From: Macrostomum lignano
Lineage: Eukaryota
Reading direction: 5' to 3'
Length of the DNA: 64,000 bases
NCBI GenBank assembly: GCA_002269645.1
Contig: NIVC01000110.1
Span: forward strand, 1-64,000
The notes under the pieces were generated by a model that worked only from the letters and a program-made list of their open reading frames with translations, did no database searches and was not told the DNA's origin. The stretch's first letter is position 1. Every line of letters begins with the position of its first letter. The position numbers and the translations under genes are program-made. Positions 959 to 48,063 of the stretch are shown in pieces.

Positions 959-3900
959 ATGAGCTGCAGATTTCGGCTGTGCTACTTGCTGGGGATTCTG
1001 GTGAGTTGGAACTCCTCGTTAATCTGCTGCTTACAGGCCTTGGTCTCTAATAGCCGGGATAATGAGATTAAAGTGGATATTGGGATAATGGATTAAAGGG
1101 GATATTGGACAATGGGATATTGGGATAATGGGATATTTGGATATTGGGATAATGGGATATTTTCAGAATGGGATTTTTCAGAATGGGATTTTTTGAAAAA
1201 AGGGATAATGGGATATTGTGAGCCTGGGCTAAGAGAAAAAAGTTTAACAAATACTTTAATCCCTGTCCTCAGTCTGCAGCAAAGGACAAAATTAGACAAG
1301 AAATGTTGTCACGAATTTTGCCTCAGCCCATTTTTTACAGAAAAAGTTTGTGTCAGATAAAGAAGACGTGCCGAAGAAGCAGGGAGCAGGTGAGGGAATT
1401 CTATAGCGGCTTGATAATTGAGGGGCTTCGGTAAGCAAGAGAGGATGGCCTGTACGAAAGAGGTTCAAGTTCACCTCTGAGGCAACCCCTGTAGAATTCT
1501 TACCTTATCCAGTCGATAAATTGTTCACTCGGGCCATTGAGTGAGTAGAAAATTGCAGTGCAAACGTTTTAATCAGCACTTCCATTGAAATCAGACCGAA
1601 CAGAAAGCGTCATGAGACTTCAACTTGAAGGCTCGATAGCACTATAAATGCCATAATTTTGTTTGCCTTTTGTTCTCACTTAACTTCTCTACCTTCACTA
1701 TACTTTTCTGAAGTCTAACCAGGTGTCACTGGCAGTCCCTGGCACTGAATTGCAGATGTCACTGGCACTGAATTGCGGGTGTCACTGGCACTGAATTGCA
1801 GGTGTCACTGGCACTGAATTGCAGGTGTCACTGGTACTGAATTGCAGGTGTCACTGGCACTGAATTGCAGGTGTCACTGGCACTGAATTGTAGGTGTCAC
1901 TGGCACTGAATTACAGGTGTCACTGGCACTGAATTGCAGTGGTGTCACTGGCACTGAATTGCAGTGGTGTCACTGGCACTGAATTACAGGTGTCACTGGC
2001 ACTGAATTACAGGTGTCACTGGCACTGAATTGCAGGTGTCACTGGCACTGAATTGCAGGTGTCACTGGCACTGAATTGCAGGTGTCACTGGCACTGAATT
2101 GCAGGTGTCACTGGCACTGAATTGCAGGTGTCACTGGCACTGAATTGCAGGTGTCACTGGCACTGAATTGCAGGTGTCACTGGCACTGAATTGCAGGTGT
2201 CACTGGCACTGAATTGCAGGTGTCACTGGCACTGAATTGCAGGTGTCACTGGCACTGAATTACAGGTGTCACTGGCACTGAATTGCAGGTGTCACTGGTA
2301 CTGAATTGCAGGTGTCACTGGCACTGAATTGCAGGTGTCACTGGCACTGAATTGCAGGTGTCACTGGCACTGAATTGCAGGTGTCACTGGCACTGAATTG
2401 CAGGTGTCACTGGCACTGAATTGCAGGTGTCACTGGCACTGTTGCCCCAGATTTTACTGAAGTAGACATAAGAAGGTCACCGAAAGGCAAGATTTATTAA
2501 CAAAAGACAAAATTGATCCCTCGAGTTTTCGCATAAAAGTACACAAGCGTCAGTCGAGCGAGATGAGCGAGGACTTGAAGGAGAGGAGATGATTAGGACA
2601 AATAAGGACCCTCTGAATTTTATTCCGAAGCGAACTTCCCTCGTCACTGTCAAACTCGCGACAGGCAAGAGTAAATTACATGTGGCAGGACCTCGACAAC
2701 TGACATTCAATACAGATACGCCGAACTGTCGTCTTGTTGCTATGCCATCCGTTGCTATGGCAACCAATCAACGCCGGAGACGCAAACACTGGCCGAATTC
2801 AAGCGGAGATGGTCATGGTTCGAATTGGCCAGCCAGTCCTGCTGCAATGTCCGGTGCTTCAACGAAGCTTCTACACCGTCAGCGTCAAGCCGAAGTACTT
2901 GGAGTGGTCTCTGCCCATGGGCCGGCCGCAACCAACCAAGTGTCCGGTCTACCTGATGAAGAGCGAAGACGAAGAGCCCGGCTGTCCGGGTGAGCTGACG
3001 GGACTCGGCGTGTCCTTGTGGCACCTCACCCAGCTCAGGGTTCACTCGGCGGAGCTGAGGCACGAAGGCCTCTACAACTGCTCGGTGTACTGGAATGCGA
3101 CCGGGTGAACGGGGCGGTGCAGCTGCTGGTGCAGGGTGAGTCGTGGGGTGTAGGAAATGGAGTGTGGGTGTGGGAAATAGGGTGCGGGAAATAGGGAGTG
3201 GGAAATAGGGTGTGGGAATGAGGTGTGGAAAATGTGGTTTGGGAAATAGGGTTGTGGGAAATGGAGTGTGGGAAATACTGTAAATTAAGACAGGTAATGT
3301 GTCTATCTGAGAGTCTATCAGAGTTTTTGTTTCTCTGTCTGTCTGTCCTTCGTTTCTCTCGCTCTTTGTCTCTCCCTCATTCGCCTTGCAAAACAACTCT
3401 CGTCTCTGTAAAAATTAGTGGTCAGTGAGCAGAAAACTTGGCATGTATAACACAGGTAATTTGCTGTTTCAACTGACTAACCAGACGATAATCACAATGA
3501 AGGTCATTTTAATCGCAGTTTACAGCGTCAAGCACTCTTAGAAATCAGGCATGCCCTGCTAGCTTTGCTTGATGCATGTGGCAGCGAATAGAAAAAGTGG
3601 TTAGTCAGAACACAAGCTCCTTCTTAAGAATAAGATTGGTAAAAGCACAATAGTGGTCTAGCACGGCGCTCTGATGTGCCAGCGGCCCAGGCTCGATTCC
3701 AAGTGCAGTCACATTCATTTTGGGCTAAATTGGAATCTCGGCTTGGCTCTGCTCGTGCAGTTAACGGCCTTGAGGGCCAACCCCCAAGGCACAGTGAAGT
3801 GTACATGCCTAACAATAAATAAAGTTAGGGCCGCTGTACACTCCTGTGTGAGTGTGTGCCTGTGCGTATGACTGCGTACGTATCCGCGCGCTTGTGTGCC

Positions 3901-6900
3901 TGCTCAGGGGAGTCGGCGGAATGGGCAGCAATGCCTCTCGCCGGTTGTGTGACAATGTCGCTTAAAGTGCGCCAGGGTGCACACAGCCCCTGCTTCTCAA
4001 AAAAATGGTACCCACCGCCCCGTGTGTAGCTAAGGTTGGCTCAGGAGGGAAGTCGCTTAGAACCGATGAATACGCACTATGCCTCAGCTTAAAAGAGGTC
4101 AGAAAGAGTCAAAAAACGGAAAGTAAAAAGATGAGCAGTTCGATTATATTTAGCGGAGAGGAAGTTAATTCGCACGACCGTAAAACGTAGTGCCGGAGTG
4201 AGGCGGCAAAGAGCTCCTAGGAATAATTGAAATCGGGGGTACCAGGCCTAAATGCACATCGCAGTGGATAAAATTAAATATTTCTGTCTCCAGGCCTTTT
4301 AAAGCCTTTGCAGATCCACTGCATTAGCGGGAATTTCTTCTTATAATTTATTGTCACTTGGACTGAAACCAGAGCTCCTGACCCGAGAGCTTCGAGAGAT
4401 TATAACCTGGAGCACTTGATCCTGAAGTTGAAGGACATTGGGAGTGACTAGATTTTCGATTCTCTCGTACTTCTATTTTAAAAGACATTCACTTTGTTGA
4501 AGTTTTGTAACTTTCTCAGTTGATCCGCGCAGTACCGCTTGGACTTTTGTTGAATCAAAAAATCTGTTTTTGTTTATTGCGCGCTAAAAAATGCTCATGA
4601 GGCCCCAGCCCTCAAGGCACAGATTGTGTGCATGCCGGACACTGAGAAAGTCAGTGTCAGGCCGCCGTAAACTCTGTGAGTGTTCGTGCTCGGAGCTGCG
4701 TGGAACGGGCATGCTGCCTCTTCGCTGGCTTGTGGTTCGACCGTCGCCCTGACTAATTGCGACAGCGCCCACAGCGCTTTCCTGAGCTGTTTGGCCGGGT
4801 TCTTGGGCGAGCGGTTCTCTTCACGCTCGTAACTTCCAACTTGAAAAAAACTACTTTAGACTAGAAGATTTCGATCCAACCTAAATCATTGACGATTCAT
4901 TCACTATCGAATACCCCGAGTAGTCTTTATTCAGGATTTATCGGGAATCGTCGAAAACACCTGACAGACAAGCCAACAGCGCCGCTGCACTTGAACGCTA
5001 CTGTGCTTGGCTCGCACGCGATTCACCTGACTTGGCAGCCTCCGCGTCATCTGCGCCACCTGCCGTTGACCTCCTACGAAATTGCCACGAGCAGCGGCAC
5101 CTATCGTCACCTTGGAGACCGATTGATCTGGCATAGAGTTGAGCCTAGACGACTCAGCTACAGGGTGACAGGCCTGACAGCATACACTGAGTACTGCACC
5201 TGGCTGCGAGCCGCTAATCAGCTGGGCCCGGGACCGAGCACTCGCCGCTGCGAGCTACGAACTCTGGAGTCTCCACCGCAGCCAGCGGCCCTGTCCGCTA
5301 CCGTCACCAACGTCCAAGCCACCAGCGCCAAGCTTCGATTGAGCGTTGCACCGGCCGGGCATCCGTCTCTGGGCGGCAGACTGCGCGAGGTCCGGGTGCG
5401 ATGGCGTCGGACGCGCCACCTCGAATCGCACGCAGGCATGGAGGATCAGTGGACTGAGAAGACACTGGTTGCTAGGCAGTTTCGCAGCCGAACCACTGCC
5501 AGCCAGGACGTTGATCTGATGCTCGATGATCTCGAAGCTTTTAGCGGCTACAGTGTGCGATGCACCGTGCACAACTGGAGATACGCTGGGCCGGAGCTTC
5601 TACTGACTTTTGAAACACTGGAGGGCGGTGAGGAGTCTTATCTGTAGTTTTTCTCTGAACCTGGATGCAGTGCCTAAAGTGGGGTCACTTTCAGAAAATC
5701 AAAATTTGCATAATAAAAAATTCACATTGTTACTTTCACCGGAGAAAAGCTTCACAAGCTCGAAATTTTCGATTCAGCAGAAGTGCAGACTAGAATGCAA
5801 GCCTTTTTGAACTTGTGAAATTTCGATCTCACGACCCCATAAAGTGGTTTTCGGTGCAGAAAATTTAGAAAACATACGTCATGTGCAGTCTGGCGTGTTT
5901 TATGAAGACTTTGCAAAATGTAGTGATACAATCGATCTTGGTTTCTAACCAATAAAACATTCAATTCGATTAGAACGTTCTGGGTTTGGATGCATTCAGT
6001 AGTTCTTAGCATCTTGAATCGATGCGGGATCAATGTTTTAAAAGGATACTTAGATTTCAAACTTTTCATTTCAATGCAGAAGCCCCAGCGCCCACGCTGG
6101 CCCAGGACACGCACGCCCTGTTCGACACGAATGTCAGCGTCTCCTGGTCTCGTCTAGCCAGAGTGCCGGGCCACCTGACCGGCTACCAGCTCTCGTTGTC
6201 CGGCCCCTTCAACAGTCGCCGGTTGATCAACATTTCCAGCGAGTTCACTCGGTACTGCATCGCTGGACTAAAGCCGGCCACTCGATACTCAATCACCATA
6301 GCAGCTGTCACTCGCGTCCGAGGCCCTGGGCGCGCGTCTAACCGAGTAGACATCGCCACGGAGCCCAGCTGGCCAAGCCGGCCGCGAGATGTCCGGGTGG
6401 ATGAGAGAAGCTACGAAGCCGGCCTGTTGGTCTCCTGGGCCAGTCGCGGCTTCTTCGTCGGTTCGCCCGCGGTTGACCGCTCAGAAACACCGTATCCGCC
6501 CAACCTGCTGCTGTTCAGAGTTGAATGGCGGCTACGCAAAGTCTCCCAAGGTCTGCGGCTGGCAGGACGTCCAGGTGGTTCGAGGGAGACCCTCGTGCTG
6601 AGTCAGCTGGGCCAATGCCGGGTCAATGCGGCGTGGAGGCCCAGGGCCCAGGTCGCGAATGCAACAGTCTACCCAAATGAATCAGCAGAGGCGAGGACTA
6701 AATACCTGAGCACGCGCATCTGTGTAGGTTTTTATGCTAGCCTAAGATGATCTATTTCAAATAGTATTTCCTTGATCCCCCTAGACTGATGTCACACGAG
6801 TCTTTTTGGTCAGTTTCACTGGATCCATTCGTCAGCTAATAAAAACAACTCTGACTTTGCACGGGCTCAATTTAATCTAGAGCATATCTAAATTTTCAAG

Positions 6901-9900
6901 CAAAAGATCAGGAAAAGGCATGGTTAAATGAATCGAATGCTCTTTAGATGATAGAAGAAAGAATATTTCTCGTACAATAAAGGTTGGGGCCTAATAGTAC
7001 TTTGACGGCTTTCGTCATTTCATGGCTAATTTTATACGTCAAATTCCGTAGCGGAATGCACTTTTTCAGCTTCTGCAAGGGCAGCTGTTTTCTGCTGTTT
7101 CTGATGGGCGATTTTGAGGCTTTGTAGGCGAAAAAATATCATTTTTCTCTTTGTTCATCTATTCAGGAGCTTTGGCTTGCTGCTGGGCTGTTTGAGAACT
7201 GGGGAAGGGGCGCAAGACTGTCTTGTAGGGATGGCAGCAGGTAGCAACTGAAACCTGACTCCCACGAGTTGACAAAATGATAGCCCTCTCATCCTGTGCT
7301 TGTATAATTGTAGTCTGCACTGTCTTTAGTAGCTAACAGTCTGCTATTTAGGAGCTATGTTTTTTTCATAGCAGATATAGAGACAGCTTAACCTCGGCAA
7401 GCTTATGTTGAAAATGAACAACGCTTGCGGAACCTCCCTACGAGCGTACTACTCTAGTTGCATGCATTGACTTCCTTCTCTTTCCGCTTCGCCAATCGTT
7501 ATAAAACGTGACATAAAACGCTATCGTTTTATATCAGATTCCATTGACTAAAAATGCGGAAAAATGGGGTTGTCAATCTGCGCACTGCTAGAAGTCAACC
7601 AGTTCGTAGAATTTGGGCAGTTACATATAACAGGCAATTTGATATCTCTTTAATAACAAGGATAAAAGTTCAGTAGCACTGGCGGTCGAACTCAACTTTA
7701 AAAAACATCCACTGAAACAATTTCTTAAATCTGCCTCAATCAACTCAGGAGTTAATACCCTGGACAACACTGGCAAGATCAATCGGAATTGCAATCCAGC
7801 AGCATTCGAATCCATCAGCGCATGTCAGCCTGGACGTCGTGGTAACAAGCGTTGGATTGTCCCAGTGGGACCGCGACCGCAGGTATCCGGGCACAAGGCA
7901 AAAACCGTCAGCGTCTCTGTGCCTCTTGCATATCTGTTAATCGACCGTTCGACTTGGGACGGCCTGGCTGACTTTAACAACGAATTCTCTAACGGCGACG
8001 AGTCGGCGATAGCTACAGGAGATCGGCGACGCCGGCAAGTGACGTCGGTGAGCATTGGACTCGGCGTTGGCTGCCTGTTTGCAGCGCTGGGACTGGTGGC
8101 GGCCGTGCTGCTGGCCTGGCAGTGGCTCTGCGGCAGGGCGACGCGTCGGAACCGAGGCGTCGGCAGTGCCAGCTATCGCAGACGAAGGCTGCGCGCCGTT
8201 GGCAGCAGCATAGGCGGCGGTGGAACCAAAAGCGGCTGCGGAGTGGAGATTGGAGATTCCGGTTAGGACGCATGTTTGACCTGCATAAGAACTCAATATT
8301 AGAGTCTTTTTTAGAATTTTCATGGTAGATAATTCTTTTAGCTTTAGACATTTTGTCGCGATTTTTTAATCCATTGCGTCATGGAAGCATGGCACTTTAA
8401 CATAAAAGTTCTCTTCGATACTTTGCTTGCTGACCTAATTCTGTCAGCATCAATTCACAAGTTGCAAGCATCTAGCTTAGCCCAAAGCCATGCAATCCTT
8501 TCAGATCCACACGACCCTGCTCAAACATCGGCTCTTCTGAGTAACCCGGCGGGCATGACTATAGCCGAATTCCGGGATCACGTGATCGCTTGTCACGCCA
8601 ACGACGATTCCGGCTTTCAATCGGAGTTCCAGGAGCTCCAAAGCTCGGACCCGCCGATCTCGTTGACTGCATTAGATTGCAAACCAGAGTCCGAGGACAA
8701 GGAGAAAACGACGCGCGAAGCTTTTGTAGCTGCGTGCTGGAAATATCCAGAAAATTTGAGTAAAAATCGACACCCAGATGTTTACCCGTGTAAGTTTGAT
8801 TATTTACGTTGTCCTTTGTCGATCTAAGATATTGATTGTACTTTCAATGGCATCCTTAAACTAGTTGCTATAAAATTTTTACCAGGACACAGTTCTTAGT
8901 TGGTCAAAAGTTGCCTTTCTTAACCGTCAATACAAATGTCTCTTGATGGTCGCTCCTGTCTCTTGGTAGACACTCCTGTCTCTTGGTAGGCGCTCGTGTC
9001 TCTTGGTGGTCGCTCCTGTCTTTTGGTAGACGCTCCTGTTTCTTGGTAGGTGCTCATGTCTCTTGGTAGGCGCTCCTGTCTCTTGATGGTCCCTCCTGTC
9101 TCTTGGTAGGCGCTCGTGTCTCTTGGTAGGCGCTCGTGTCTCTTGGTAGGAGCTCGTGTCTCTTGGTAGGCGCTCCTGTCTCTTGGTAGGCACTCCTGTC
9201 TCTTGGTAGGCACTCCTGTCTCTTGGTGGTCGCTCCTGTTTCTTGGTAGGTGCTCATGTCTCTTGGTAGGCACTCCTGTCTCTTGGTGGTCGCTCCTGTC
9301 TTTTGGTAGACGCTCCTGTTTCTTGGTAGGTGCTCATGTCTCTTGGTAGGCGCTCCTGTCTCTTGATGGTCCCTCCTGTCTCTTGGTGGGCGCTCCTGTC
9401 TCTTGGTAGGTGCTCATGTCTCTTGGTAGGCGCTCCTGTCTCTTGATGGTCCCTCCTGTCTCTTGGTAGGCGCTCGTGTCTCTTGGTAGGAGCTCGTGTC
9501 TCTTGGTAGGCGCTCCTGTCTCTTGGTAGGCGCTCCTGTCGTTCGTTGTTATCTCCTAGACATAAAAATGGAGCCAAAAAGTTGCTATCAGATGTGCTCC
9601 TGTCATTCGTCGAGTCTAGCTTGGTTACCAGTTTCATTTAGTTTTTGAGGGTAGCGCAATTTTCGCGGGGGCGATTGGTGACCTCCTGACCGAGCCCCCC
9701 ATCTGCTTACGTATTGATAATCCTGTGTATAAGCTGCTTTTCTCAGTCGCAATCAGAAGTAATAACTGCCGCTACTTCAGACGATCACAACCGGGTCATA
9801 CTTCGGTCAACTTCAACTAATAAGAAAAATGCCGACTACATTAACGCCAGCTATATTAGTGTAAGTAAAGTTTATTTATTTTGCTCAAGTATACTGATAG

Positions 9901-14857: not shown

Positions 14858-15998
14858 TTGAGTCTGTGCTCAATCAGCCTGAATGATTTTTTCGAATACA
14901 TAAGTTTTGTGCCTTGTAAAACCGCCGCGCACCAAACACAATTACGAGAAAAGTACAAAAGTTTTACGCAAAACAACAGAAAAATCTTCTCGCTACTGAG
15001 CATGATGAACTAAAATTAATTTAGTAACCATTAACTAAATTAACGATGGCTTGAGCAAAACCTGAGCAAGCTTGTAACGTTCTACTGTATCCCCACGATT
15101 GACTCACAAATCATCGGATCAGCAAGATGTGATTTGTTAAAACTAATTGCACCGATCTTTGTTTCAATTGTTGCGAACTTATAATTTATAGTTACCATCT
15201 ACCAAATACCCACTGCTAAAAAATTCAACTAATGTAGCTCGTATTTTGCTCTTTTTGTTTTGCTTTTTTTCTTGTGAAATTGCTATACACACTGCGCTCT
15301 TGCTTAGCTGCTGTGCCATCTTGACTTGCTCTAGACAGAGTGGCATATTCCGGCCACTTCAATGCTATATTTAGAGTGCAAAGCTACCGAGATCTTCACT
15401 GATCACCTTTGTAAGCTCTGTGAGTTGAACTATTGTATATGACTTGTGGTATTCACTCCGCCATCGATAGACAGATGGCCTTTGGATCAAGTTGACAAAA
15501 ATGTACAGTTCTAGAATTTCAATGATGAATTTGTCGGTTTTAAGCTGCTAGATACTAATAGTAGCCAAGTGGAATTCGAATTCATATGTTTAATTATCCA
15601 AAAGTTTGGTCTGCTCGATCGTATGTAATTGATTGTTGAAGGTGGTGTTCGATAAGTTCTGAATGCCATTCATGGCTCATTCGATTTCCCCTTGGCTTAG
15701 CTTTCAGTCCAGGTGGGAAGTACAGTACGAGTCTGATCTTTGCCGCTTTTTGCTCAACCTCAAGTTGCAGGTTGTGTGGCCGGGGGTGAAATGTTGTGAG
15801 GGGTCGACTGACAACTTCGGCCGCTGAATGAGTCAAGCATGCATGCGAAAGGGGTTTATAAATCCATCGTTGACAAACTTCTTTTGATAATAATCGAAAT
15901 ACGAGACGAATATAACTGTTCCGGATTGGAGAGGCGATGAGGTAAGCAAGACCACACCCATAAATTTTATTAGAAACAGGTGCGCAACTTGAAAACTT

Positions 15999-16150
15999 TG
16001 TAGCCTATAGAGGTTAGAGCGTCGGACTCACAACTGAAAGGTCGAGGGTTCGATTCTCGATCCACTCGGAACAATTTGTGTTCGGGAGCAAAACACAACT
16101 CTGCATTGCTTCAATTTACCCAGCTGTAAAATGGGTGCCAGCATTAGCAG
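15999..16150 (+). mobile_element. tRNA-head SINE of a second family, with a CORE-like segment
   Basis: A-box-like tagcctatagaggtt and B-box GGTTCGATTCT, followed by ...cccagctgtaaaatggg, which resembles the CORE-SINE motif. Confidence 0.6.
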
Positions 16151-17066
16151 CGGCAATTAACCACTTAAGCTCCGCCTGAAATCCAAAGCACGCTGAAAAA
16201 ACCATGGATGAATGAATAGAATGGATTGCTATTCTGGCTCTGGCTATTTTCGTTTTTGACTCTTTTGCATCCGGTTCCCCCCGTGCCTTTTCATTGGTTG
16301 ATGATTGCCATAGACAATTTTCGGCCTTCGCCCCTTTCTTTCGATGCACAAGCGCTTTCGCTCGTGTTTTGAAATAAAGGGGGAAGACCTACGAGCGCTC
16401 GATATTCTCTGCAAGTAACTGACATTCTCAGTTCTTTGCGCCTGTGCATCGAAAGAAAGGGGCGAAGGCCGAAAACTGTCCATGGCAATCATCAACCAAC
16501 GAAAAGGCACGGGGGGGAACCGGATGCAAAAGAGTCAAAAACGAAAATAGCCAGAGCCAGAATAGCAATCCATTCTATTAGTGAAGGGGAGGCAAAGACA
16601 AGACAAACCAAGTGTGGCGATGGCGAGGCAGCGAAAAGCCAGAGGATGCAACCCTCAGACGATCGTATTTATTTCATGACTTGTTAAAACGAATTAAACT
16701 GATTAAAAATTATAATTAGCGAGGAAAAAAAATTCAACCGCGAGCAACCCCGCGCAGCCACAAAGGTGGCGGCCTAAATAGGCACGCGCACGCACCAACG
16801 CACCCACCACCCCACCAGACAGCCAGCACCCAAACAGCACTAACAGCGGTTAGCCCTCGCGGGCTCGCGCAAACCGATGCATTAGTGAAGGGGAGGCAAA
16901 GACAAGACAAACCGAGTGTGGCGATGGCGAGGCAGCGAAAAGCCAGAGGATGCAACCCCAAGGCCAAACAAACAAATGAATGAACGAAGGAGAGAATTTA
17001 CGAAACGGCGGAAATAAGGCTGGGGATAAGAACGGAAATAAAACTTTAAACACAAGCAAAAGTTAC

Positions 17067-18110
17067 TCAAAGGCAACTCTCGTTAAAAGCACCAGCAAAA
17101 CGCGAACCAGCCCGCACAGAATCAGCAGATGGAAGGTAGGCAGTCACAGCATCACTTCGCCAGTCACCGATGCACTTCACCTCCTGAACAGATAGTCCGA
17201 GACGGTAGGCCCAGGTGGCACCACCTCTGCGCAGGCTGTGCGCTGAGAAAGAACGAGCGTCCTGCTCAGCAGTTGCTAGGCAGCGCTTGAGGAACCTGTC
17301 GAATCTTGAGGCAGACAGGACAACAGAGGATCCGCTCGCCAACTGGTAGGAGAACACAGGCTGCCTGCAGCCAAGCTTGCTGACACGGAGGTGACCCTCT
17401 AGCGCAGCCACTGGGCAAAGCGGATGTCCTTCTTTTAGCCTTGGAAGCAACACCCGGTGCAGCTTCGCGCCGAACTGATTCGTCTTGCCATAACTGACAG
17501 AGAGCACAACCCCCTTCGGGTGGCGTTGAAAGGCTGAGACGGAAATCGGTGAAGCGGACTGCTGACTGGGCAGGAGACTGGAGCGCCGAAACATCCCCCA
17601 CCAAGCAATAAGCGTCACAAGCCAGCAGACTCTGTCAAGCGAACTGCTCGAGTTAAGCCGGTTTTTCACAGACAGCAGCATCGCAGGCGAGATCGGCAGC
17701 TTCCGTCTTGGTCGCTGGCCCATCCTCCGTTTAGCGCCGCGAACGAGCAGTGAGACCAGGTGGTGTTTTGTTAGGTCCTCAGCACCACAGGCTTTGAACC
17801 AGCTGGACAGTGCACTGACATGGACACGCAGACTGTTGAACGATCTCAGGCGGCATTCGACCAGGTGAGCCAGGTAGTTGAGTAGCACCGACCGGTCGGA
17901 TCGAGCCGGGTTGGTCCCGTTCTCGTTGCAGAAGCTGTGCCAGGACCGGACGGCCGATGAGATCGCCCTGCGTGACTGCGGTGCGTATGCTGCGGCGAGG
18001 AGGCTGGAGGCGGTGGCGCCGAGGGTCGGCGTTGCAGGGAGGCGGCCTGTGAAAATAAAAAACGGGAGGCAAAAACAGAAAACGCGTGATCCGAAAACTC
18101 CACAGGGCAA
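17067..18110 (-). CDS. Tyrosine recombinase of the YR retrotransposon
   Basis: Catalytic residues visible: GMFRR (R), YGKT (K), HSLRRGGA (HxxR), GDW, TAYL (Y). The ORF overlaps the 3' end of pol. The true start is uncertain and may be spliced. Confidence 0.95.
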   Translation of the reverse strand: MPCGVFGSRVFCFCLPFFIFTGRLPATPTLGATASSLLAAAYAPQSRRAISSAVRSWHSFCNENGTNPARSDRSVLLNYLAHLVECRLRSFNSLRVHVSALSSWFKACGAEDLTKHHLVSLLVRGAKRRMGQRPRRKLPISPAMLLSVKNRLNSSSSLDRVCWLVTLIAWWGMFRRSSLLPSQQSASPISVSAFQRHPKGVVLSVSYGKTNQFGAKLHRVLLPRLKEGHPLCPVAALEGHLRVSKLGCRQPVFSYQLASGSSVVLSASRFDRFLKRCLATAEQDARSFSAHSLRRGGATWAYRLGLSVQEVKCIGDWRSDAVTAYLPSADSVRAGSRFAGAFNESCL

Positions 18111-19759
18111 ACTGGTACAGACCCGTAAACACGGAAAATAAAATTAAGCAACTCATGACGCGAGTGCAGGCGGGACCCTGCATCAGCAAACAGCTGATAA
18201 GCACCAGGAACGTGAAAGACCTCAAATTCAACGTCAAAACGCAGACAGAGCAACGCCACAGACTGCAGCAACCACATCAGACGCGAGTCCTTGGAGACAC
18301 CTCGCCTTAGAATCCAACACGCCGTCTCATTGTCGCAGTACACAGCAAGCCGACAACCAGCCAAGGATTGGCCCCATCTCAAAACAGCCAGCAATATAAC
18401 CACAGCCTCCTTGTAATTGATGCAGTAATTCTGAAAAACACCATTTGCGTCGATCTGCCAGTCAATAAAGCACCAATCACGAATCCCATCACCGTCACGG
18501 AGCACCGCCGCGGCGCCTGAAGACGACGAGTCAGTCTCTATGGCAACACAAGCCCTCGGCGAAGTCCACAGGCCAACACCGATGCGATGCTGCAAAGCCA
18601 ACCGCCACCAGGAGAGGTGGTGCACCACGGAGGGACTAACAAGAACCCTGTCATGAGGTCGATGCAGCTTGTTAACAATGTCGATAAGAGGTCGGAGGAA
18701 AACTCTCCCGTGCCGAACAACTTGCGACGCCCAGTTTAACTTGCCGATCAACTTCTGCAAATACGACTTTGACAGCCTTTTCTTCGAAGAGCAGAGGGAT
18801 AAAACATGCAACAAGTCTTGGACTTTTTCGGCAGGAAGAGACATCTGGCCTGCCACGCTATCAAATAAAATGCCCAGAAAGGTCATCCGCGTTGTCGGCG
18901 GAACACACTTGCTACGGTTAACGGTGAAGCCTAGCCGCTCGAGCAGATCGATGAGATGGTTGTAGAACTTCCAGCAGGACTCCAGATCTCCACAAAAGGC
19001 GAAGTCATCCATGTAGGCCTCCATAGCGTAGAAACCATGCTTCAACATCATAAAACGCACAGCTTGGCTCAGCTCGTAAAAGCAGAAGACGGAAGCCGAA
19101 GCACCAAACGGGAGCCGCGTGTCGTACAGGTACACTGGCTGGCCCTCGCCTTGGAGCTGAATCTTCATGCCTGTGACCCGGTGGTCATCAGGGTGCACAC
19201 CACATGAACGATATGCTTGCGACAGATCCACTTTGCACATGTACGCGCCGCTGTACAGCTTCGAGGCAAAGTTGCTGGCCGAAGTAAAACGCAACTTCCG
19301 TTTCGACTCAAAGAAATCATTCACAGAGGCGCCAGTTGGCAGGCTGCAGTCGTGAATAAGGCGGATGGAAGACGAATCCGCCTTAGGGATCGCACCAAGT
19401 GCACTAACGATGAGCGGCCGGTTGCCTGCCTGGCAGCGCCTGTAGCGGTCCTGCTTGAGCTCCTGGCGCACCTGGGCCTCAACAGCTTGCTGGTGAATGG
19501 TAGCTGATCTGTGATTTGCCATCTCAGTGTGGTTCTTACAATCCATCACTTTATTAGTAATTCGAAAGCCATTCTTCACACCATCGAGCACGAACCTGAC
19601 ACGGTCCTCCGGCATCTCGGTCCCAGCCAGCTCTTCCCGCCAAACCGCAAACACAAGGTCGCTCGACAACTCAGTTGAACTCGGGTCACATAGGGGGAGC
19701 TCCCCCGTGGGGGCACAGGAGGGCGACCCGACGGCAGACATTGAGTCCTGTGCCCCCAC
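17846..19759 (-). CDS. Reverse transcriptase-RNase H (pol) of the YR retrotransposon
   Basis: RLIHDCS, KVDLSQAY, LPFG, YMDDF, FLG; RNase H motifs TDSS, INYKE, YCDN, HVPG..AD. Confidence 0.97.
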   Translation of the reverse strand: MGAQDSMSAVGSPSCAPTGELPLCDPSSTELSSDLVFAVWREELAGTEMPEDRVRFVLDGVKNGFRITNKVMDCKNHTEMANHRSATIHQQAVEAQVRQELKQDRYRRCQAGNRPLIVSALGAIPKADSSSIRLIHDCSLPTGASVNDFFESKRKLRFTSASNFASKLYSGAYMCKVDLSQAYRSCGVHPDDHRVTGMKIQLQGEGQPVYLYDTRLPFGASASVFCFYELSQAVRFMMLKHGFYAMEAYMDDFAFCGDLESCWKFYNHLIDLLERLGFTVNRSKCVPPTTRMTFLGILFDSVAGQMSLPAEKVQDLLHVLSLCSSKKRLSKSYLQKLIGKLNWASQVVRHGRVFLRPLIDIVNKLHRPHDRVLVSPSVVHHLSWWRLALQHRIGVGLWTSPRACVAIETDSSSSGAAAVLRDGDGIRDWCFIDWQIDANGVFQNYCINYKEAVVILLAVLRWGQSLAGCRLAVYCDNETACWILRRGVSKDSRLMWLLQSVALLCLRFDVEFEVFHVPGAYQLFADAGSRLHSRHELLNFIFRVYGSVPVCPVEFSDHAFSVFASRFLFSQAASLQRRPSAPPPPASSPQHTHRSHAGRSHRPSGPGTASATRTGPTRLDPTGRCYSTTWLTWSNAA

Positions 19760-19767
19760 CTCGCACG

Positions 19768-20859
19768 CTAGTTTTTTGAAAATTGGCCCGGGTCCCCATC
19801 AGCGTGGGCTCGGGCTTCAGAGTGCGGCTGTGAGCACCTGCGGCACTGATGGGCGAAGCGGCAGTGAGTTCTGTTGCAGCCGCTAAGACTGTTGAAGTCG
19901 AAACAGACAGGTGGCTGCGTTCGCTTTTTAGGCGCTGTTGCGCTTATCATTTTTGTTGGTGCCATCAAGTGTGTTGCCACCAGACCCAGGTCTGCGCTAA
20001 CAGCGCTCCACCGCGTTCCATCATGCTGGAGAAGCCGACATTCGTCATCATATCTCATGACTTTAGTGCGATCGAAGCCTAAATCTAGCAGGTCACCAAT
20101 TCTAGCGTTATGTCGGAGATGATCGATCAACTCGGATGAATCGATTCTGCCATCAACAATGCGCAGCAGTTTGCCATCACGCAGCATTTGCACCAGTAAG
20201 TTACAGCTACCGGAGATGAAATCGCCAAACGACAGTGACTCGGGACTGACGTGTCTCAACCTCTCTGGCTTTGCCGCTCCCACAACAGACTGGCTTCCTT
20301 GTCTCCGCTTACGCTCACTGATAAAATCAACGACTCTGTACACCGCCGGCGCCTGAGCATGCGAAGTTGCAGCCCCAGCCTGCCCGAGTATACACTCGCC
20401 AACCAAATCATGCCACTCACCGGGAGTCTGATCACGTTCTCTCGCAGCCGCCGTGCCACTGTGACGCGCTTCAGCGAGCTCGGCTTCGAGCTGAGCCTCT
20501 CTTTTTTTCAGGTCCAGCAGCCGAATGCGCAGTTCAGTCTCTCGCAGCTGATCCTCGAGACCGCCTCCCGTCGCCGCCCGACCCTCGGCCGAGGCGCCCA
20601 CCGCCGGTAGCATCTCGTCCTCAGGTGGAGCCAGACTTAGCTCGGGTGCGCCCGCATTCGTCGGTGATGTCTTGTCATCTTGAGCACGACGAGATGAGCC
20701 TCTGTCCTGCTCCAACGCCTGCCGCTCAAGCTCCTTGGCAATGCTGAGTTTTAGACGACTTGTTAGCTCTTGCTTATTGCCATTAGTAGGCAGGCCGCGC
20801 TCACTAAGGGCTTCTCGTAGCGCTTTGTTAGTTGCGGGCAGTACAAGGCTATCTGCCAT
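19768..20859 (-). CDS. Gag-like ORF1 with an N-terminal SAP motif and a C-terminal Cys/His finger
   Basis: LREALSERGLPTNGNKQELTSRL (SAP consensus); coiled coil; C-terminal CFDFNSLSGCNRTHCRFAHQCRRCSQPH. Confidence 0.9.
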   Translation of the reverse strand: MADSLVLPATNKALREALSERGLPTNGNKQELTSRLKLSIAKELERQALEQDRGSSRRAQDDKTSPTNAGAPELSLAPPEDEMLPAVGASAEGRAATGGGLEDQLRETELRIRLLDLKKREAQLEAELAEARHSGTAAARERDQTPGEWHDLVGECILGQAGAATSHAQAPAVYRVVDFISERKRRQGSQSVVGAAKPERLRHVSPESLSFGDFISGSCNLLVQMLRDGKLLRIVDGRIDSSELIDHLRHNARIGDLLDLGFDRTKVMRYDDECRLLQHDGTRWSAVSADLGLVATHLMAPTKMISATAPKKRTQPPVCFDFNSLSGCNRTHCRFAHQCRRCSQPHSEARAHADGDPGQFSKN

Positions 20860-21469
20860 GATTCAGCAAAAAAATTCAACCGCGAGCTTTCGCTCGTGTT
20901 TTGAAATAAAGGGGGAAGACCTACGAGCGCTCGATATTCTCTGCAAGTAACTGACATTCTCAGTTCTTTGCGCCTGTGCATCGAAAGAAAGGGGCGAAGG
21001 CCGAAAATTGTCTATGGCAATCATCAACCAATGAAAAGGCACGGGGGGGGGAACCGGATGCAAAAGAGTCAAAAACGAAAATAGCCAGAGCCAGAATAGC
21101 AATCCATTCTACAATATTCATTCATCCATGGAAAAAACCCACTGGCTGCAGAGCGGCCATAGACAATTCTAACCCCAGATTCACTCACCCCGAGCCTACC
21201 CGATAGGACCACGTAGACAAAGTCGAAGACTCTGATAAAATCTGTGTTCTTGACTCTATGGTGGAGAGTAAAAAAGAGAAAGAAAGAAGTCTCTCCCGTG
21301 AAGCTAAACTGTCACACTCTGTTTTCTTTACTTTTTATCTGCTCTTGCATGGCTGAGCGTCGCCAACCTTTCGACGACTCTTTTTCTCTTCACATCTGGC
21401 CAAATTGGGACCGGTGTAATCATCAATTTTTAAATACTGGCAAATATTTTTACCCATTTAGCCTAAGCG

Positions 21470-22890
21470 TGCACTCGTAACTGCAACAAAATCGCCTGGC
21501 CCTGACAACATCGCCCCCTGTATCCTTCAGGAAGCGCTAAAGCTGCAAAATTTTGCTGATTCTCTCTCTAAATTACTTGTTGACTGTTTTACTACAGGTT
21601 ATATTCCCACGATCTGGAGAATGTCCAGAGTCGTGTTCATCCCGAAGCCCGCCAAGGGTGACTACACCAACGTGAAATCCTTCCGACCCATCAGCCTCAC
21701 CTCTTTTTGCGTTAAGCTGATGCAGAGGCTCATCCTGTGGAGGCTTCGAGAGAGTGACCTGCGCTCCGACCCCGTCAGTAAGTTCCAGTACGCCTTCCAG
21801 CCTGGGAAGACGACTGAGCACGCTCTCCATGCCGCTAGCTCCAAGATCGAGAGTGCTATCTTTAGCAAACAATTCGCGGAATGTTTGTTGACTTCGAAGG
21901 AGCCTTTGACAACGTTCTATTTCGCTCCTTCAGAAACTCCCTTTCCCGCAGGAATGTGAGACACAGAATTGTCCGCTGGATTTACTTTATGACCCGCAAT
22001 AGGTTTGCGACATCTACGCTTATGGGCGTTACCTGCACCCGGGCGGTGATGAAAGGCGGCCCGCAAGGTGGCGTGCTTACTCCACTTCTGTTGAACCTCG
22101 TCATGGACGAGCTCCTGACCGCTGACATTCCCAACAGTATTAACAGGGCGGGCTGCGCCGAGGACGTTGCCGGGGTCGTCAGCAGACCCGACCCCGCCAC
22201 TCTGCGCAACCTGATGCAGCAATTCGCCGACAAGGCGGCTGACTGGACCAAGCAGCATGGCCTAAAAATAAGCGTCACGAAGACCGTCACAGCAATATCC
22301 TGGGCAACGAGCTCGCGGACTCTCTCGCCAAGGAGGGCAGCAACCCAGACGGCAACCACCGTCTGATGAGGCTACGCACTCCCAGGTCGCAAGTCACCCA
22401 CCATATCAACAGTCGGAAAGCTGTACCGACTACAGGCAGACCCGCTCTGCCATGCTTAATCTGAACAGGAAAGTCTCTGACTATCTGAACTCGCTTAACA
22501 GAACCGACCTCAGGGAGATGTGCATCGTCCTAACCGGCCATGGATTCTTCCAGAGACATATCTCGTTGCAAACCGGTTGCCCTCCCACCTGTCCTTTTTG
22601 TGGCATAGGAGAGGAGACCGCGGAGCATCACGTCACCTTCAGCCCTTACTTCAACAAGGCGCGGAATAAATACCTCGGCCACCCCCAGCGGACGGACGAG
22701 CTGACCAACCCGAACAACATCCGTGACCTTCGCGCCTTCGTCCGGGACTCCGGCCGGATGAGGGTCGCCGATGCCTCCCCCGTGAACCTGCCGACTACTG
22801 GCGGGGGCTGGGCGCACCCCAGGGTTAATCCTTGGTCACTCTTACCTTGGGATTGCGATAGCCTGCGCCCCCCCGTCAGTAGTGAGTAAT
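21470..22890 (+). pseudogene. Decayed LOA/R1-group non-LTR retrotransposon (5'-truncated, frameshifted, internally deleted)
   Basis: [56 protein letters not shown]; GTAA-type tail at about 22885-22900. Homologous to ORF2 of the element at 54034-59837. Confidence 0.9.
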
Positions 22891-38002: not shown

Positions 38003-39255
38003 ATGATTGGAAAAAAATTAATAGTCACGTGGTCGCTGTTTGTGCTGATGCTGTCTACCATTCACAGCTCCGAGGGTTGCTTTTCGAGATTTAACGGTAA
38101 GTTGAACATCGACTGGGCCTTATATAAACATGCTATAATTTTTGCTAAAATACTGATAGCTATTCAGAACCGAGCTGAAACACGCCAATGCTTTACCCTC
38201 CCCACCCTACCTCGTGACCCGTTATATAAATCAATAATATAGCTTCCAGATGCCAAAATGAGTGTCTGTGGTGCCTAAATGAGTGTCTGTGGTGCCAAAA
38301 TGAGTGTCTGTGGTGCCAAAGTGTCTGTGGTGCCAAAGTGTCTGTGGCGCCAAAATGAGTGTCTGTGGTGCCAAAGTGTCTGTGGCGCCAAAATGAGTGT
38401 CTGTGGCGCCAAAATGAGTGTCTGTGCGCCAAAATGAGTGTCTGTGGTGCCAAAATGAGTGTCTGTGGCGCCAAAATGAGTGTCTGTGTTGCCAAAATGA
38501 GTGTATGTAGCGCCAAAATGAGTGTATGTAGCGCCAAAATGAGTGTATGTAGCGCCAAAATGAGTGTATGTAGCGCCAAAATGAGTGTATGTAGCGCCAA
38601 AATGAGTGTATGTAGCGCCAAAATGAGTGTATGTAGCGCCAAAATGAGTGTCTGTGGTGCCAAAATGAGTGTCTGTGGTGCCAAAATGAGTGTCTGTGGT
38701 GCCAAAATGAGTGTCTGTGGTGCCAAAATGAGTGTCTGTGGTGCCAAAATGAGTGTCTGTGGCGCCAAAATGAGTGTCTGTGGCGCCAAAATGTCTGTGG
38801 CGCCAAAATGAGTGACGTCTATGGCGCCAAAATGAGTGCGTAACTCCTAGTGCTAACAACACCTATTCCCAAAATATAGAACGAATTTTATTTAATCATG
38901 TAGAATTCTTGGTTTTGTTGCCCCACCATAAAAACTATGGCGATACCCCTGAACTGAAGTAGTCAGTTTTATTAACAATACGCCGGTTCAAAAGGTGGTT
39001 CTAATAAATATTTTAAATAAATAAATGCGCAATTTTGAATTCTTTTCAGTCGGCAAAACTCAAGCCAGCCCGGCTTTGCGCGCCTTCGTTGCGCAGTTGC
39101 GAAATGCACTCGGCATCAAGGATGACGGATCAGTTGGTGGTGATGTCGGCATATCTCAGACGGATATCGACAACTACAGGCGGATGTACAAGAACCAGAC
39201 TGCTAGGGCTGTTGCGGATTCAGATGGCAACGCCAACACAAAGTACATTGCTTAA
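38003..39255 (+). CDS. Small secreted protein E (2 exons, Cys at predicted +1)
   Basis: Exon 1 38003-38096 (MIGKKLIVTWSLFVLMLSTIHSSEGCFSRFN, G|GTAAGT); exon 2 39050-39255 (ttttcag|TC GGC: VGKTQASPALRAFVAQLRNALG...KYIA*). Phase 1. Confidence 0.75.
38250..38840. repeat. 21-bp minisatellite (GCGCCAAAATGAGTGTCTGTG)n in the intron of gene E
   Basis: Period of 21, with 18-bp variants. Confidence 0.97.
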
Positions 39256-40265
39256 TGTCCCCTTTACCACCCGCATTCAGTAGTATCAAAAGAAGTTTTT
39301 TATCTGCTGTGATTTTGAATTTCCTATTTATTTTAACGCCACTTCCACGCTCGTAAATTTTTGTTACAATCCTCTTAATTCGTATTAACATTTATTGCTT
39401 AAATTAATAAGTCCAGTCTTGTCTTGTTAAGCAACCATAAATTTCCCTACCATTGCGCGTGATAGCTATGACACGACTACCATCAGGTTCCCACCAGATA
39501 AGCAATTACTCACAGTCACAGCAGATTGTTAAAATATTGAATATGTATGGGAGACAGTAATAAATGTCACAAATAGTTCACCTAAGTTATCTGCTTCAAT
39601 GCAGACTCGGACTGCCGACCTTTGCTTAGCCTACGAGTACAAAACGCAGCTAATAGTCACGGGGTAGTCAACAAAACTAAAGCAAAGTGCGTCTACGGTG
39701 CTCAAATTTTAATGCTCAACGTACATTTAATTTTAAAGCTATACATGCACCTGCATTTGCAGGAATATTCTACTTCTTAGAGTACACAGGCCTATAGCTA
39801 CGCTCGTAGTCCAAATAGATCAAAGTTCAGTGCTTTTTCAACCCGTCATGTCTCACTAAGCAGTCTGAGTTCGTTTGTGTTTGTTTCTTAGTAGAGGTAT
39901 TGAGTTGGCTAACCATTGCCAGCGGATTCAGAGTAGCTGGTGGTGCTTCATGTCTTGTACAAAACGCATCACTTGTGTAATTGTTAACTTTACATATGGT
40001 TAACATATGGTTAACTTTAACTGAGGCTGATATTGACTGGCTGAGAAACTGATTATGTCATAAACTGTTTCGTGTGAGTGTTTAATTATATAACTGCTAC
40101 AATTCATTCTATTAATTCAATGAGAGCTAGCCTAGATGTGAACAGATTGGAGTGCTTCTGCAGTGGCCAGGGTTCGAATCTTTGTAGTGTAAACTTTTTT
40201 ATTAAAAGTTATAAATAAAAGATTTAAATCATGCGATTTAAAAAATATTGTACTCGATGACAAAA

Positions 40266-42588
40266 CCATTACTGCACTAGATGTGAAATCTATAATTGCA
40301 CTAGATGTGAAATCTATAATTGCACTAGATGAGAAAACAAAGATTGCACTAGATTAGACAACTATTACTGCACTAGATGAGAAAACTATTATTGCACTAT
40401 ACTAGACATCTATTACTGCACTGGGTGAGAAAACAAAGATTGCACTAGATTAGACAACTATTACTGCACTAGATGAGAAAACTATTATTGCACTAGATGA
40501 GAAAACTATTATTGCACTAGATGAGAAAACAATTATTGCACTAGATTAGACATCTATTATTGCACTAGATGAGAAAACAATTATTGAACTAGATGAGAAA
40601 ACTATTATTGCACTAGATGAGAAAACAATTATTGCACTAGATGAGAAAACAATTATTGCACTAGATGAGAAAACAATCATTGCAATAGATGAGAAAGCAA
40701 TTATTGCACTAGATTAGACATCTATTATTGCACTAGATGAGAAAACAATTATTGCACTAGATGAGAAAACAATTATTGCACGAGATGAGAAAACAATTAT
40801 TGCACTAGATGAGAAAACAATTATTGCACTAGATGAGAAAACAATTATTGAAATAGATGAGAAAACAATTATTGCACTAGATGAGAAAACAATTATTGCA
40901 CTAGATTAGAAAATAGTTATTGCACAAGATGAGAAAACAATTATTGCACTAGATGAGAAAACAGTTATTGCACAATATTAGAAAACAGTTATTGCACGAG
41001 ATGAGAAAACAATTATTGCACTAGATGAGAAAACAATTATTGCACTAGATTAGACATCTATTATTGCACTTGATGAGAAAACAATTATTGCACTAGATTA
41101 GACAACTATTATTGCATTAGATGAAAAAACTGTTATTGCACAAGATGAGAAAACAATTATTGCACTAGATTAGACATCTATTATTGCACTAGATGAGAAA
41201 ACAATTATTGCACTAGATGAGAAAACAATTATTGCACTAGATTAGACAACTATTACTGCACTAGATGAGAAAACTATTATTGCACTATACTAGATATCTA
41301 TTACTGCACTGGATGAGAAAACAATTACTGCACTAGATGAGAAAACAATTATTGCACTAGATTAGACAACTATTAACTGCACTAGATTAGACAACTATTA
41401 CTGCACTAGATGAGAAAACTATTATTGCACAAGATGAGAAAACTATTATTGCACAAGATGAGAAAACTATTATTGCACTAGATTAGACATCTATTATTGC
41501 ACTAGATGAGAAAACAATTATTGCACTAGATGAGAAAACAATTATTGCACTAGATTAGACAACTATTACTGCACTAGATTAGACAACTATTACTGCACTA
41601 GATGAGAAAACTATTATTGCACAAGATGAGAAAACTATTATTGCACTAGATTAGACATCTATTATTGCACTAGATGAGAAAACAAATATTGCACTAGATG
41701 AGAAAACAATTATTGCACTAGATGAGAAAACAATTATTGAAATAGATGAGAAAACAATTATTGCACTAGATGAGAAAACAATTATTGCACTAGATTAGAA
41801 AATAGTTATTGCACAAGATGAGAAAACAATTATTGCACTAGATGAGAAAACAATTATTGCACTAGATTAGACAACTATTATTGCATTAGATGAAAAAACT
41901 GTTATTGCACAAGATGAGAAAACAATTATTGCACTAGATGAGAAAACTATTATTGCACTAGATTAGACATCTATTATTGCACTGGATGAGAAAACAATTA
42001 TTGCACTAGATGAGAAAACAATTATTGCACTAGATTAGACAACTATTACTGCACTAGATGAGAAAACTATTATTGCACTATACTAGACATCTATTACTGC
42101 ACTGGATGAGAAAACAATTATTGCACTAGATGAGAAAACAATTATTGCACTAGATTAGACAACTATTAACTGCACTAGATTAGACAACTATTACTGCACT
42201 TGATGAGAAAACTATTATTGCACAAGATGAGAAAACTATTATTGCACTAGATTAGACATCTATTATTGCACTAGATGAGAAAACTATTATTGCACTAGAT
42301 GAGAAAACAATTATTGCACTAGATTAGACATCTATTATTGCACTGGATGAGAAAACAATTATTGCACTAGATGAGAAAACAATTATTGCACTAGATGAGA
42401 AAACAATTATTGCACTAGATGAGAAAACAATTATTGCACTAGATGAGAAAACAATCATTGCAATAGATGAGAAAGCAATTATTGCACTAGATTAGACATC
42501 TATTATTGCACTAGATGAGAAAACAATTATTGCACTAGATGAGAAAACAATCATTGCACTAGATGAGAAAACAATTATTGCACTAGAG
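40266..42588. repeat. 24-bp satellite (CTAGATGAGAAAACAATTATTGCA)n with interspersed variant monomers
   Basis: Period of 24; second monomer type CTAGATTAGACATCTATTATTGCA; variant blocks recur (e.g. about 40850 and about 41740). Confidence 0.98.
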
Positions 42589-43060
42589 CTTTAGCATTTT
42601 AGCAAGGCAGCAACAGCCGACAACTGGGATAGGGAATCAGATGATCTGATGGATGCTGTGCGATGCACTAGGACGGCATACCGGAAAACAGCTATATAAT
42701 TGACCATGCGTCTGCTTTATGCACATAGTCCCTGCCCCCACCAGTTGCAAGTTTTTAGTTGGTAGCTTTTTAGGCTATTTCTGAACTTTTTAAGCTCCTT
42801 TAAAGCAAATCCAAATTCAGGTTTAGCTGAACTCAAATTTAAATCTGGCGTCTGTGTGCACATCAGGTAATATTAGACTTTCTCTCTGGCGATTTAGACT
42901 CATGAGAGTCAGTCCTAAGGCACTCACGAGCGAATCGTATCATATGTATATACACTGCCTAATAATACAACAAATAAGCCACAAACGTAACGCCTTTATT
43001 TGTTTGAAATTGCCTACAGCAAACAAACCTGTGGCACTTTTTCAGATTGAATACCTGCTC

Positions 43061-44764: not shown

Positions 44765-45469
44765 TGGGGATGGCGAATATCGACTACAGAACGACGAATG
44801 ACTCTCAAATATGATTGGTTTGCACTGGCTTCTTCTGAACAGCCTGACCATGTCAGGTTGGGCAATCTTGCTTATTCATATATAGACTACGAGCCGTATT
44901 TGTTGATCAAGTTGGAAGACAAAACTCGTCATAAGCTTTAATAACCATTACGATTATTGTGCATTGACGTCAAACTTTATATTAAATGTATTACAATACG
45001 TTGAGTGTAAGTCTACACTTAATTGAACTTTTATTTTACTGATTATGTCTAGCTTTAGTTACACGCTCCTAAACTATAATCATCCAGACCAGTTTCTGGC
45101 TTCTCCTCGTAAAAAGCGACCAAACATAATCTCTATTCTTTAATGTTGCAATTTTATATTGATATAAACTATTGACAGACTGTTGAATAGAACTGACTCT
45201 GTCTCCCTGGAACCATACCACTTTATGATTGATCCGGTGTTTTGGGTTAGAACGGGCAGAAACTAGCCATCAATTATGCTTGCACAGTGCTTATCTGAGC
45301 CTATCTAATACACTCTGGGACAGCTCTGAAACTGCAGGAAACGTAGAATCTGCTGACTTTTATTCAATTTGCCCCGATAGACAGGCACTGGATAGGAATT
45401 AAATGCAAAACTCTAGTGGCGATGGAAGCATCATATTTATGGCGCCATAGTAGAGTGGCGCTATAATAG

Positions 45470-47706: not shown

Positions 47707-48063
47707 GCCTGGTTCCCTGGCTGCAGCACTGAGCTGCGGAAAGGGAACTAGAGATAAGCTACACATTGAACTGTCAATTTTGGGCGTCTAGTTTTGCAAG
47801 GCTCAGAAATATGTTCATTAATCATAAAATTATTTGATTTTTTAATAATTAGAGAACATTCGCAATATAGAATTCGAACTTATGCTCAAAGATTCCTATG
47901 GCTGTCTATGGGAAATCTTGCAATGAGGCACCTTGCCGTATCTGCTTTCAAAGCTTATAAAAGCGTGTTTCAAGACGCATTAAATGAATAAAATTAGTAA
48001 TGCTTTTAGTAGTAGCTACAGTACCTCTAAGCTGCATTAGTGTTAACTATAAACACCGAAGTA

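Follow-up and report, generated by a model that had tools for sequence, protein, structure and literature searches.

How does a retrotransposon that carries its own recombinase come to lie inside a small DNA transposon, next to an extra and incomplete copy of part of that same transposon? This question is raised by a locus in a 64,000-nt stretch of the Macrostomum lignano genome (contig NIVC01000110.1, positions 1 to 64,000 of the forward strand, assembly GCA_002269645.1), which we call the window. Here, a foldback miniature inverted-repeat transposable element (MITE) of about 396 bp, flanked by an 8-bp target site duplication (TSD), contains a 4.3-kb copy of a Ngaro-type tyrosine recombinase (YR) retrotransposon on the minus strand. 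An earlier reading of the locus, which we refer to as the original prediction, had described an intact YR retrotransposon wrapped in the terminal inverted repeats (TIRs) of a DNA transposon and had proposed that retroelement DNA carrying MITE sequence from elsewhere entered a resident MITE. The division of the locus into a resident MITE and a YR retroelement is upheld by our analysis.

We analyzed the MITE and its repeats before turning to the insert. Both outer arms open with the same 15-mer, CATGGATGAATGAAT, at position 16203 on the plus strand and at position 21130 on the minus strand. This 15-mer has no further exact copy within the 64 kb, and shuffled sequences gave on average 0.13 matches at up to two mismatches. 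The left arm is 94% identical to the right outer arm when indels are counted, and 96% identical to the inner arm copy. The reconstructed empty MITE, with arms of 153 and 161 nt and a loop of 82 nt, is non-coding. Its 8-bp TSD, CATGG termini, long arms, and short loop resemble those of P-superfamily or foldback MITEs. The terminal consensus of the P superfamily, CANRG, fits the CATGG found at both MITE ends; hAT-type elements also make 8-bp duplications, and their terminal consensus fits CATGG less well. No transposase was found among the large open reading frames (ORFs) of the window. When the 4.9-kb composite was compared with the whole 64 kb by BLAST, in search of a second copy of the composite, the element, or the MITE, only internal repeats were returned.

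The MITE loop and a truncated right arm occur twice in direct orientation, once on each side of the retroelement, with 97.8% identity over 226 alignment columns. The two copies differ by three substitutions (C at 16476, 16481, and 16499 in the inner copy; T at 21008, 21013, and 21031 in the outer copy) and by the length of a G-run (7 versus 9). The left arm has the bases of the outer right arm at each of these sites and the inner copy is the deviating one, as the original prediction had observed. These changes are T-to-C on the plus strand, that is, A-to-G on the sense strand of the element; all three fall in the stem and none in the loop, and they yield G.U pairs in the predicted RNA hairpin. 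The outer arms, for their part, differ from each other by a 5-bp indel, CAATA (21112-21116), by one loop-adjacent substitution, and by G-run length. CAATA is the only non-homopolymer indel between them, and its position is equivalent, with an offset of 0-3 nt, to that of the arm-element junction (compare 16217/16218 and 16577-16579). We searched nearby for a template of this insertion and found none. Microhomologies are present at both junctions of the insert, ATT at 16577-16579 and GC at 20886-20887. The TSD, outer TIRs, inner arm copy, and direct repeat were all recovered within about 5 nt of where the original prediction had placed them, and its two microhomologies were confirmed; only the extent of the inverted repeat needed correction, reaching about 5 nt further inward than noted. 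All coordinates are collected in Table 1.

Table 1. Coordinates of the composite element, of the terminal repeats in three relatives (numbered on their own contigs), and of other repeats in the window. A1, A2, B1, and B2 are the split direct repeats of the retroelement.
Sequence	Feature	Coordinates	Strand	Remarks
Window	Left TSD copy, GAAAAAAC	16195-16202		Identical to 21131-21138
Window	Left MITE arm, starts CATGG	16203-16355	+	Inverted repeat with 20970-21130 and with 16438-16579
Window	224-bp direct repeat, left copy (loop and truncated arm)	16354-16577		97.8% identical to 20886-21111
Window	MITE loop, left copy (spacer Y of the original prediction)	16356-16437		Identical to 20888-20969
Window	Inner copy of right MITE arm	16438-16579	-	Terminal 19-24 nt absent; three private T-to-C changes
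Window	Repeat B2, 78 nt, native 3' terminus	16577-16654	-	Final bases CACTAAT (element orientation); stops where B1 stops
Window	A2-B2 spacer, 71 nt	16655-16725	-	AATAAA at 16673 to 16668, 13 nt ahead of B2
Window	Repeat A2, putative full internal copy, 155 nt	16726-16880	-	Directly after B1; by analogy with L004, L011, and L012
Window	Repeat B1, 78 nt	16881-16958	-	77/78 identical to B2
Window	Tyrosine recombinase ORF	17067-18110	-	Overlaps end of RT frame; motifs HSLRRGGATWA and GDWRSDAVTAY
Window	RT/RNase H ORF, without methyltransferase domain	17846-19759	-	RVT_1 and RT_RNaseH both above Pfam cut-offs
Window	gag-like ORF, N-terminal SAP domain	19768-20859	-	From ORF list and Pfam
Window	A1 remnant, last 20 of 155 nt, 5' end of copy	20868-20887	-	Followed by conserved GCTGAATC, then gag ATG
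Window	224-bp direct repeat, right copy	20886-21111		GC at 20886-20887 common to A1 remnant
Window	Right MITE arm, complete	20970-21130	-	5-bp insertion at 21112-21116 relative to left arm
Window	Right TSD copy, GAAAAAAC	21131-21138		Identical to 16195-16202
L004	A1; B1; A2; B2	3701-3916; 8541-8709; 8706-8921; 9261-9429		Spacer 339 nt
L011	A1; B1; A2; B2	3674-3805; 8131-8333; 8334-8465; 8535-8739		Spacer 69 nt
L012	A1; B1; A2; B2	3585-3765; 7460-7669; 7666-7846; 7899-8108		Spacer 52 nt
Window	Non-LTR retrotransposon, AP endonuclease	56828-57844	-	
Window	Non-LTR retrotransposon, RT	55210-56748	-	
Window	Non-LTR retrotransposon, RNase H	54142-55017	-	
Window	Minisatellite arrays	1735-2441, 8937-9540, 38252-38838, 40246-42587, 45467-47707, 48187-48867, 60501-62280		

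The insert encodes, in this order, gag, reverse transcriptase (RT)/RNase H, and a tyrosine recombinase, and all three frames are open. The recombinase matched the Pfam family Phage_integrase with E = 1.4e-4, under the gathering score; when aligned with its relatives, it retains the conserved motifs RKLPI, HSxRRGGATWA, and GDWRSDA..AY. Its frame starts about 55 codons past the end of the RNase H match. No Dam-like methyltransferase was matched in Pfam at E <= 0.01. Searches with Rfam and ARAGORN over 15000-22000 gave nothing relevant. Judged by gene order, by the pattern of B1, B2, and A2 described below, and by the missing methyltransferase, the insert is best classified as a Ngaro-type element; its nearest database proteins are unnamed.

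The closest of these proteins is a fused Macrostomum lignano gene model with 99% protein identity. The gag is identical to it at 336 of 337 positions over the corresponding part, up to where the model diverges, and the recombinase at 325 of 326. Hidden allotetraploidy and a still-redundant assembly, Mlig_3_7, have been described for Macrostomum lignano (PMC12801592). The source of the gene model may be a second copy of the element, or else this locus in a homeologous or redundant version. In a protein search with the RT frame, all relatives beyond the near-identical Macrostomum entry, which has no DNA attached, were at most 50% identical. An exact-protein look-up of the window gag and of the Macrostomum protein P0067 in the contig index gave no match, and a metagenome scan for relatives returned five short distant loci that were uninformative on termini.

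To define the termini of the element, we compared it with three full relatives on long contigs (L004, L011, and L012; 36-38% RT identity). Ngaro elements are defined by split direct repeats in the order A1 ... B1 A2 B2 (PMC3783388, PMC9210276). In all three relatives, A2 begins directly after B1, A measures 132-216 nt, and a spacer of 52-339 nt separates A2 from B2. Repeat A ends 21-23 nt ahead of the gag start codon in L011 and L012. Repeat B opens with GG(G) and closes with TTTAA in all three, and the 5' flank in L012 and L004 has TTA(A) in common with the end of B, which suggests, as far as the sequences go, that TTA(A) is a short crossover core for the recombinase of this clade. None of the three relatives has MITE-like arms, and all have the Ngaro-type repeat pattern of the window element, in which A1 is cut short (see below). 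In a further relative, L005, we sought terminal repeats and could detect none.

Three closer relatives (L001-L003, about 50% RT identity) lie on contigs too short to show termini. They share with the window a leader, GCTKARTC, that stands immediately before the gag ATG and after a T-run (20860-20867 in the window; 1-42 in L001, 1-41 in L003, and 373-383 in L002). The Logan contigs L001 and L003 begin 39 and 38 nt before the gag ATG. The contig starts and the leader are compatible with, and do not prove, a repeat boundary 8 nt ahead of the ATG in this clade.

Read in its own orientation, the window element begins with a 20-nt repeat (20887 to 20868), followed by 8 nt, the gag-pol-recombinase region, 108 nt, and B1. 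After B1 come 135 nt, the second copy of the 20-nt repeat (16745 to 16726), the 71-nt spacer, and B2 (16654 to 16577). Because A2 abuts B1 in the three relatives, the full A repeat here should be the whole 155 nt from 16880 to 16726, and A1 appears truncated to its final 20 nt. At its 5' end the surviving copy begins GCTCGCGGTTG / GCTCGCGG, and a full-length copy would be expected to begin GCATCGGTTTGCG. The copy is coding-complete but, by analogy with the relatives, not intact: about 135 nt of its left end are lost, so that no native terminus lies at 20887. "Intact", as used in the original prediction, holds for the three reading frames and not for the left terminal repeat. A TATA-like TATTTA (16780 to 16775) lies in A2, 35 nt upstream of the 20 nt that are also retained at the 5' end, and the absent 135 nt include the only promoter-like sequence, this TATTTA. 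Judged by the TATA-like box, the surviving 5' end is about where a transcript would start.

The two junctions of the insert look different in kind. At the 3' junction, B2 meets the MITE arm at GAATGAAT^AGAATGG, and AAT (ATT on the plus strand) is common to both. Since B2 ends at the last base of B1 and shares AAT with its target, as with TTA(A) in L004 and L012, this junction has the look of recombinase action, as if the element had integrated normally into a MITE arm. The 5' junction lies where stem and loop meet: there, the final base of the MITE loop is joined to the A1 remnant through the 2-nt overlap GC, giving the string CGAGCGAAAGCTCGCGGTTG. With 20887 non-native, this loop-element junction does not unite two native ends. 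Its appearance is that of end joining, or of a cDNA with an unfinished left end that was closed into a circle. In DIRS-1 of Dictyostelium, the RNA lacks both element ends and the cDNA is mostly linear and single-stranded (PMC7192593).

Taking into account the missing left end and the duplicated MITE segment, our tentative preference, held at somewhat less than even confidence, is that a read-through cDNA from a copy lodged in another member of the MITE family entered here via 224 nt of transduced homology. A full-length copy would first have integrated, by its own recombinase, into the same arm position of that other MITE. Transcription of this source copy would have begun at the element's start site, about 30 nt past the TATA-like box in A, and so given an RNA without the left 135 nt, and the transcript would have run beyond AATAAA, through B2, and into the adjoining MITE arm and loop. 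The RNA would then have been reverse transcribed with the usual restoration of the left end omitted. The resulting cDNA, consisting of the element without its left end plus 224 nt of MITE, would have entered the resident MITE through the 224-nt homology, and this homology would extend to every member of the MITE family.

Entry of such a cDNA could have taken two routes. Either the cDNA was circularised and underwent a single crossover with the resident MITE, or a break at the base of the MITE loop was repaired, with the 3' side annealed and the 5' side closed by GC microhomology end joining. Either route would double the 224 bp and make the cDNA-derived copy the inner one. Both yield the observed order, which in element orientation is arm, loop, element, arm copy, loop, and left arm. 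Of the original proposal, the homology-driven entry of retroelement DNA with MITE sequence from elsewhere is kept, as it gives this order; the circle is not required, because a linear cDNA used in break repair would lead to the same outcome. Its view that the duplication arose together with the insertion is likewise supported.

In support of this reading, the non-native 5' end lies at the presumed RNA start. This points to a read-through (3'-transducing) transcript as the source from which the MITE piece was captured, a step left unexplained in the original prediction; taken together, the 20-nt remnant, the element up to B2, the inner arm copy, and the loop match the content expected of such a transcript. 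Moreover, at the three variable sites the left arm has the bases of the outer copy and not those of the inner one, which thus appears to be the incoming copy. The three A-to-G differences could be either private variants of the source MITE or traces of editing of a double-stranded read-through RNA. Adenosine deamination of double-stranded RNA before reverse transcription would give the three-site A-to-G pattern, which we regard as no more than a lead.

Several points weigh on the other side. The source copy is a postulate, only a TATA-like motif marks the predicted transcription start, and three substitutions are too few for a firm pattern argument. The loop contains no AATAAA or ATTAAA in this orientation that would explain the end of the transduced piece. 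In addition, with an arm of about 150 nt, finding the CAATA indel at the junction-equivalent position would be a coincidence of about 3-5%.

This last point would be explained by the main rival, a rearrangement in situ. Here, a full-length element would have integrated into this very MITE arm at GAATGAAT^AGAATGG, and a later break at the left junction would have removed its first 135 nt. The 15-nt arm stub would then have been extended by copying arm and loop (from the downstream copy, the sister chromatid, or another MITE), with a 5-nt filler, and rejoined at GC. A single locus suffices for these steps, and they account for the CAATA indel lying within 0-3 nt of the point where the inner arm meets B2. 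Polymerase-theta end joining and synthesis-dependent repair typically leave short fillers and 2-3-nt microhomologies, such as are seen here, and stalling at a hairpin would be in keeping with copying that halted where loop and stem meet. However, no template for the 5 nt lies nearby, and the invading end would have had only 15 nt of homology. A left breakpoint at the predicted start of transcription would occur by chance in about 6% of cases. If the downstream copy was the template, three later mutations, all of one type, must also have fallen in the old copy. On balance, we consider this explanation unlikely.

The 4.9-kb composite might also have formed elsewhere and arrived whole through a P-type transposase acting on the outer arms, so that the TSD would belong to the composite. 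Its outer termini are complete and its TSD is perfect, and the window does not tell whether the MITE or the composite made the TSD. Yet the window holds neither a second composite nor a transposase gene, and the 5-bp indel near the terminus sets the arms apart. Such an arrival would leave the origin of the composite unexplained, adding to the other models and replacing none; we give it a small chance.

We also asked whether the duplication and the loop-element junction could be chimeras of the assembly, a natural concern with the redundant Mlig_3_7 of a hidden allotetraploid (PMC12801592), in which near-identical copies of the element exist. Merging of filled and empty haplotypes, however, cannot produce the novel junction at which the end of the loop meets the final 20 nt of A; the 224-bp copies differ at four places and so are not one sequence read twice, and the structure is exact to the base. 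The chance of an artefact therefore seems very small.

Finally, it is scarcely credible that arms and loop are the inverted terminal repeats of the retroelement itself, in the style of DIRS1 and with no separate MITE: DIRS1-type inverted terminal repeats do span a few hundred bp (PMC7192593), but an internal region repeating the outer ends would be required, the outer 15-27 nt have no internal copy and are just the bases missing from the inner arm copy, the element has its own Ngaro-type repeats like its armless relatives, no methyltransferase domain is present, and both an 8-bp flanking TSD and a truncated A1 would be unexpected.

Two further candidates were rejected. Fold-back templating of the new arm copy on the left arm fails since the loop is repeated directly, not inverted, and the loop-adjacent substitution is common to the two right-arm copies. 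Insertion by the machinery of long interspersed nuclear elements (LINEs), as for a processed pseudogene, does not fit either, as the insert has neither a poly(A) tail nor a flanking duplication.

The element and the proposed read-through cDNA can be compared with known systems. The element resembles the Ngaro type (order DIRS) in the order of gag, RT/RNase H, and YR, in lacking a methyltransferase, in having B1 and B2, and in the position of A2 right after B1, as in L004, L011, and L012. It differs by its A1, cut to 20 of 155 nt, and by the SAP domain in its gag. Whereas the textbook Ngaro layout has adjacent repeats, the window element and its three full relatives have a 52-339-nt spacer between A2 and B2.

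With DIRS-1 of Dictyostelium, the likeness lies in a transcript without ends, which is restored from an internal copy of the joined ends, a role that B1 plus A2 could play here, and in the linear cDNA intermediates (PMC7192593). The window element has no inverted terminal repeats, internal complementary region, or methyltransferase, all of which occur in DIRS-1.

Entry of cDNA by homology has precedents. Ty1 cDNA recombination and the capture of cDNA at chromosome breaks occur in yeast. For Tf1, integrase-independent insertion of cDNA by homology at resident repeats has been shown experimentally (PMC11042837). The single-strand annealing of Tf1 resembles the route favoured here in that cDNA enters by homology to a resident repeat and that the products carry a duplicated repeat. 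In Tf1, however, the homology is the element's own; here it would be read-through sequence from a host transposon, the element is of the YR type, and only one junction is homologous.

The capture of downstream flank also has known parallels. LINE-1 and read-through long terminal repeat (LTR) retrotransposons carry out 3' transduction by read-through. As in those cases, flank beyond a weak poly(A) signal would have been copied along with the element. The present case differs in that there is no poly(A) tail and no target-primed signature, and the transduced piece would have served as a recombination substrate.

The repeats of the composite also bear on its transcripts. The original prediction had expected read-through transcripts to form a long hairpin, and the RNA does fold in prediction into a stem of about 140 bp, with -296 kcal/mol and z = -33.5. 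A minus-strand transcript leaving the element, or one starting at the internal A2, would fold into the stem, which might act as a silencing trigger, as the original prediction had suggested.

Other features of the window were noted in passing. About 130 nt upstream of the MITE, at ~16005-16075, lies a tRNA-like stretch with a box-B-like GGTTCGATTC, uncalled by ARAGORN and Rfam; it may be a tRNA-derived short interspersed nuclear element or a decayed tRNA gene. A non-LTR retrotransposon occupies 54142-59481 on the minus strand, in a GC-rich block (56-61% GC); its ORFs, including that of the apurinic/apyrimidinic (AP) endonuclease, are listed in Table 1. At 42854-44764 on the plus strand, a single uninterrupted ORF of 636 aa gave a match to ASC, the family of amiloride-sensitive sodium channels (E = 3.6e-35). 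Seven long minisatellite arrays are also present, each built from 28-114 copies of a 15-28-nt unit; the strong GC skew at 46-48 kb (0.52) is due to the array at 45467-47707.

Taken as a single locus, the composite is instructive as a rearrangement but does not amount to a new kind of system: it is an unusual variant of read-through transduction combined with homology-driven or break-repair insertion of cDNA. A broader scenario, which we regard as distinctly doubtful, is that YR retrotransposons could spread without their recombinase, with MITE-carrying read-through cDNA homing by homology, the composites being movable by a DNA transposase, their transcripts folding into a 140-bp hairpin, and the A-to-G changes standing as a fossil of editing of that hairpin ahead of reverse transcription. 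The replication and integration of DIRS- and Ngaro-type elements are known mostly from models and from one experimental system. If the read-through cDNA explanation is true, this locus would be a natural record of unrestored read-through YR cDNA reaching the genome by host recombination, and it would show a retroelement and a DNA transposon fusing into a unit whose ends are competent for a transposase and which has a long hairpin built in.

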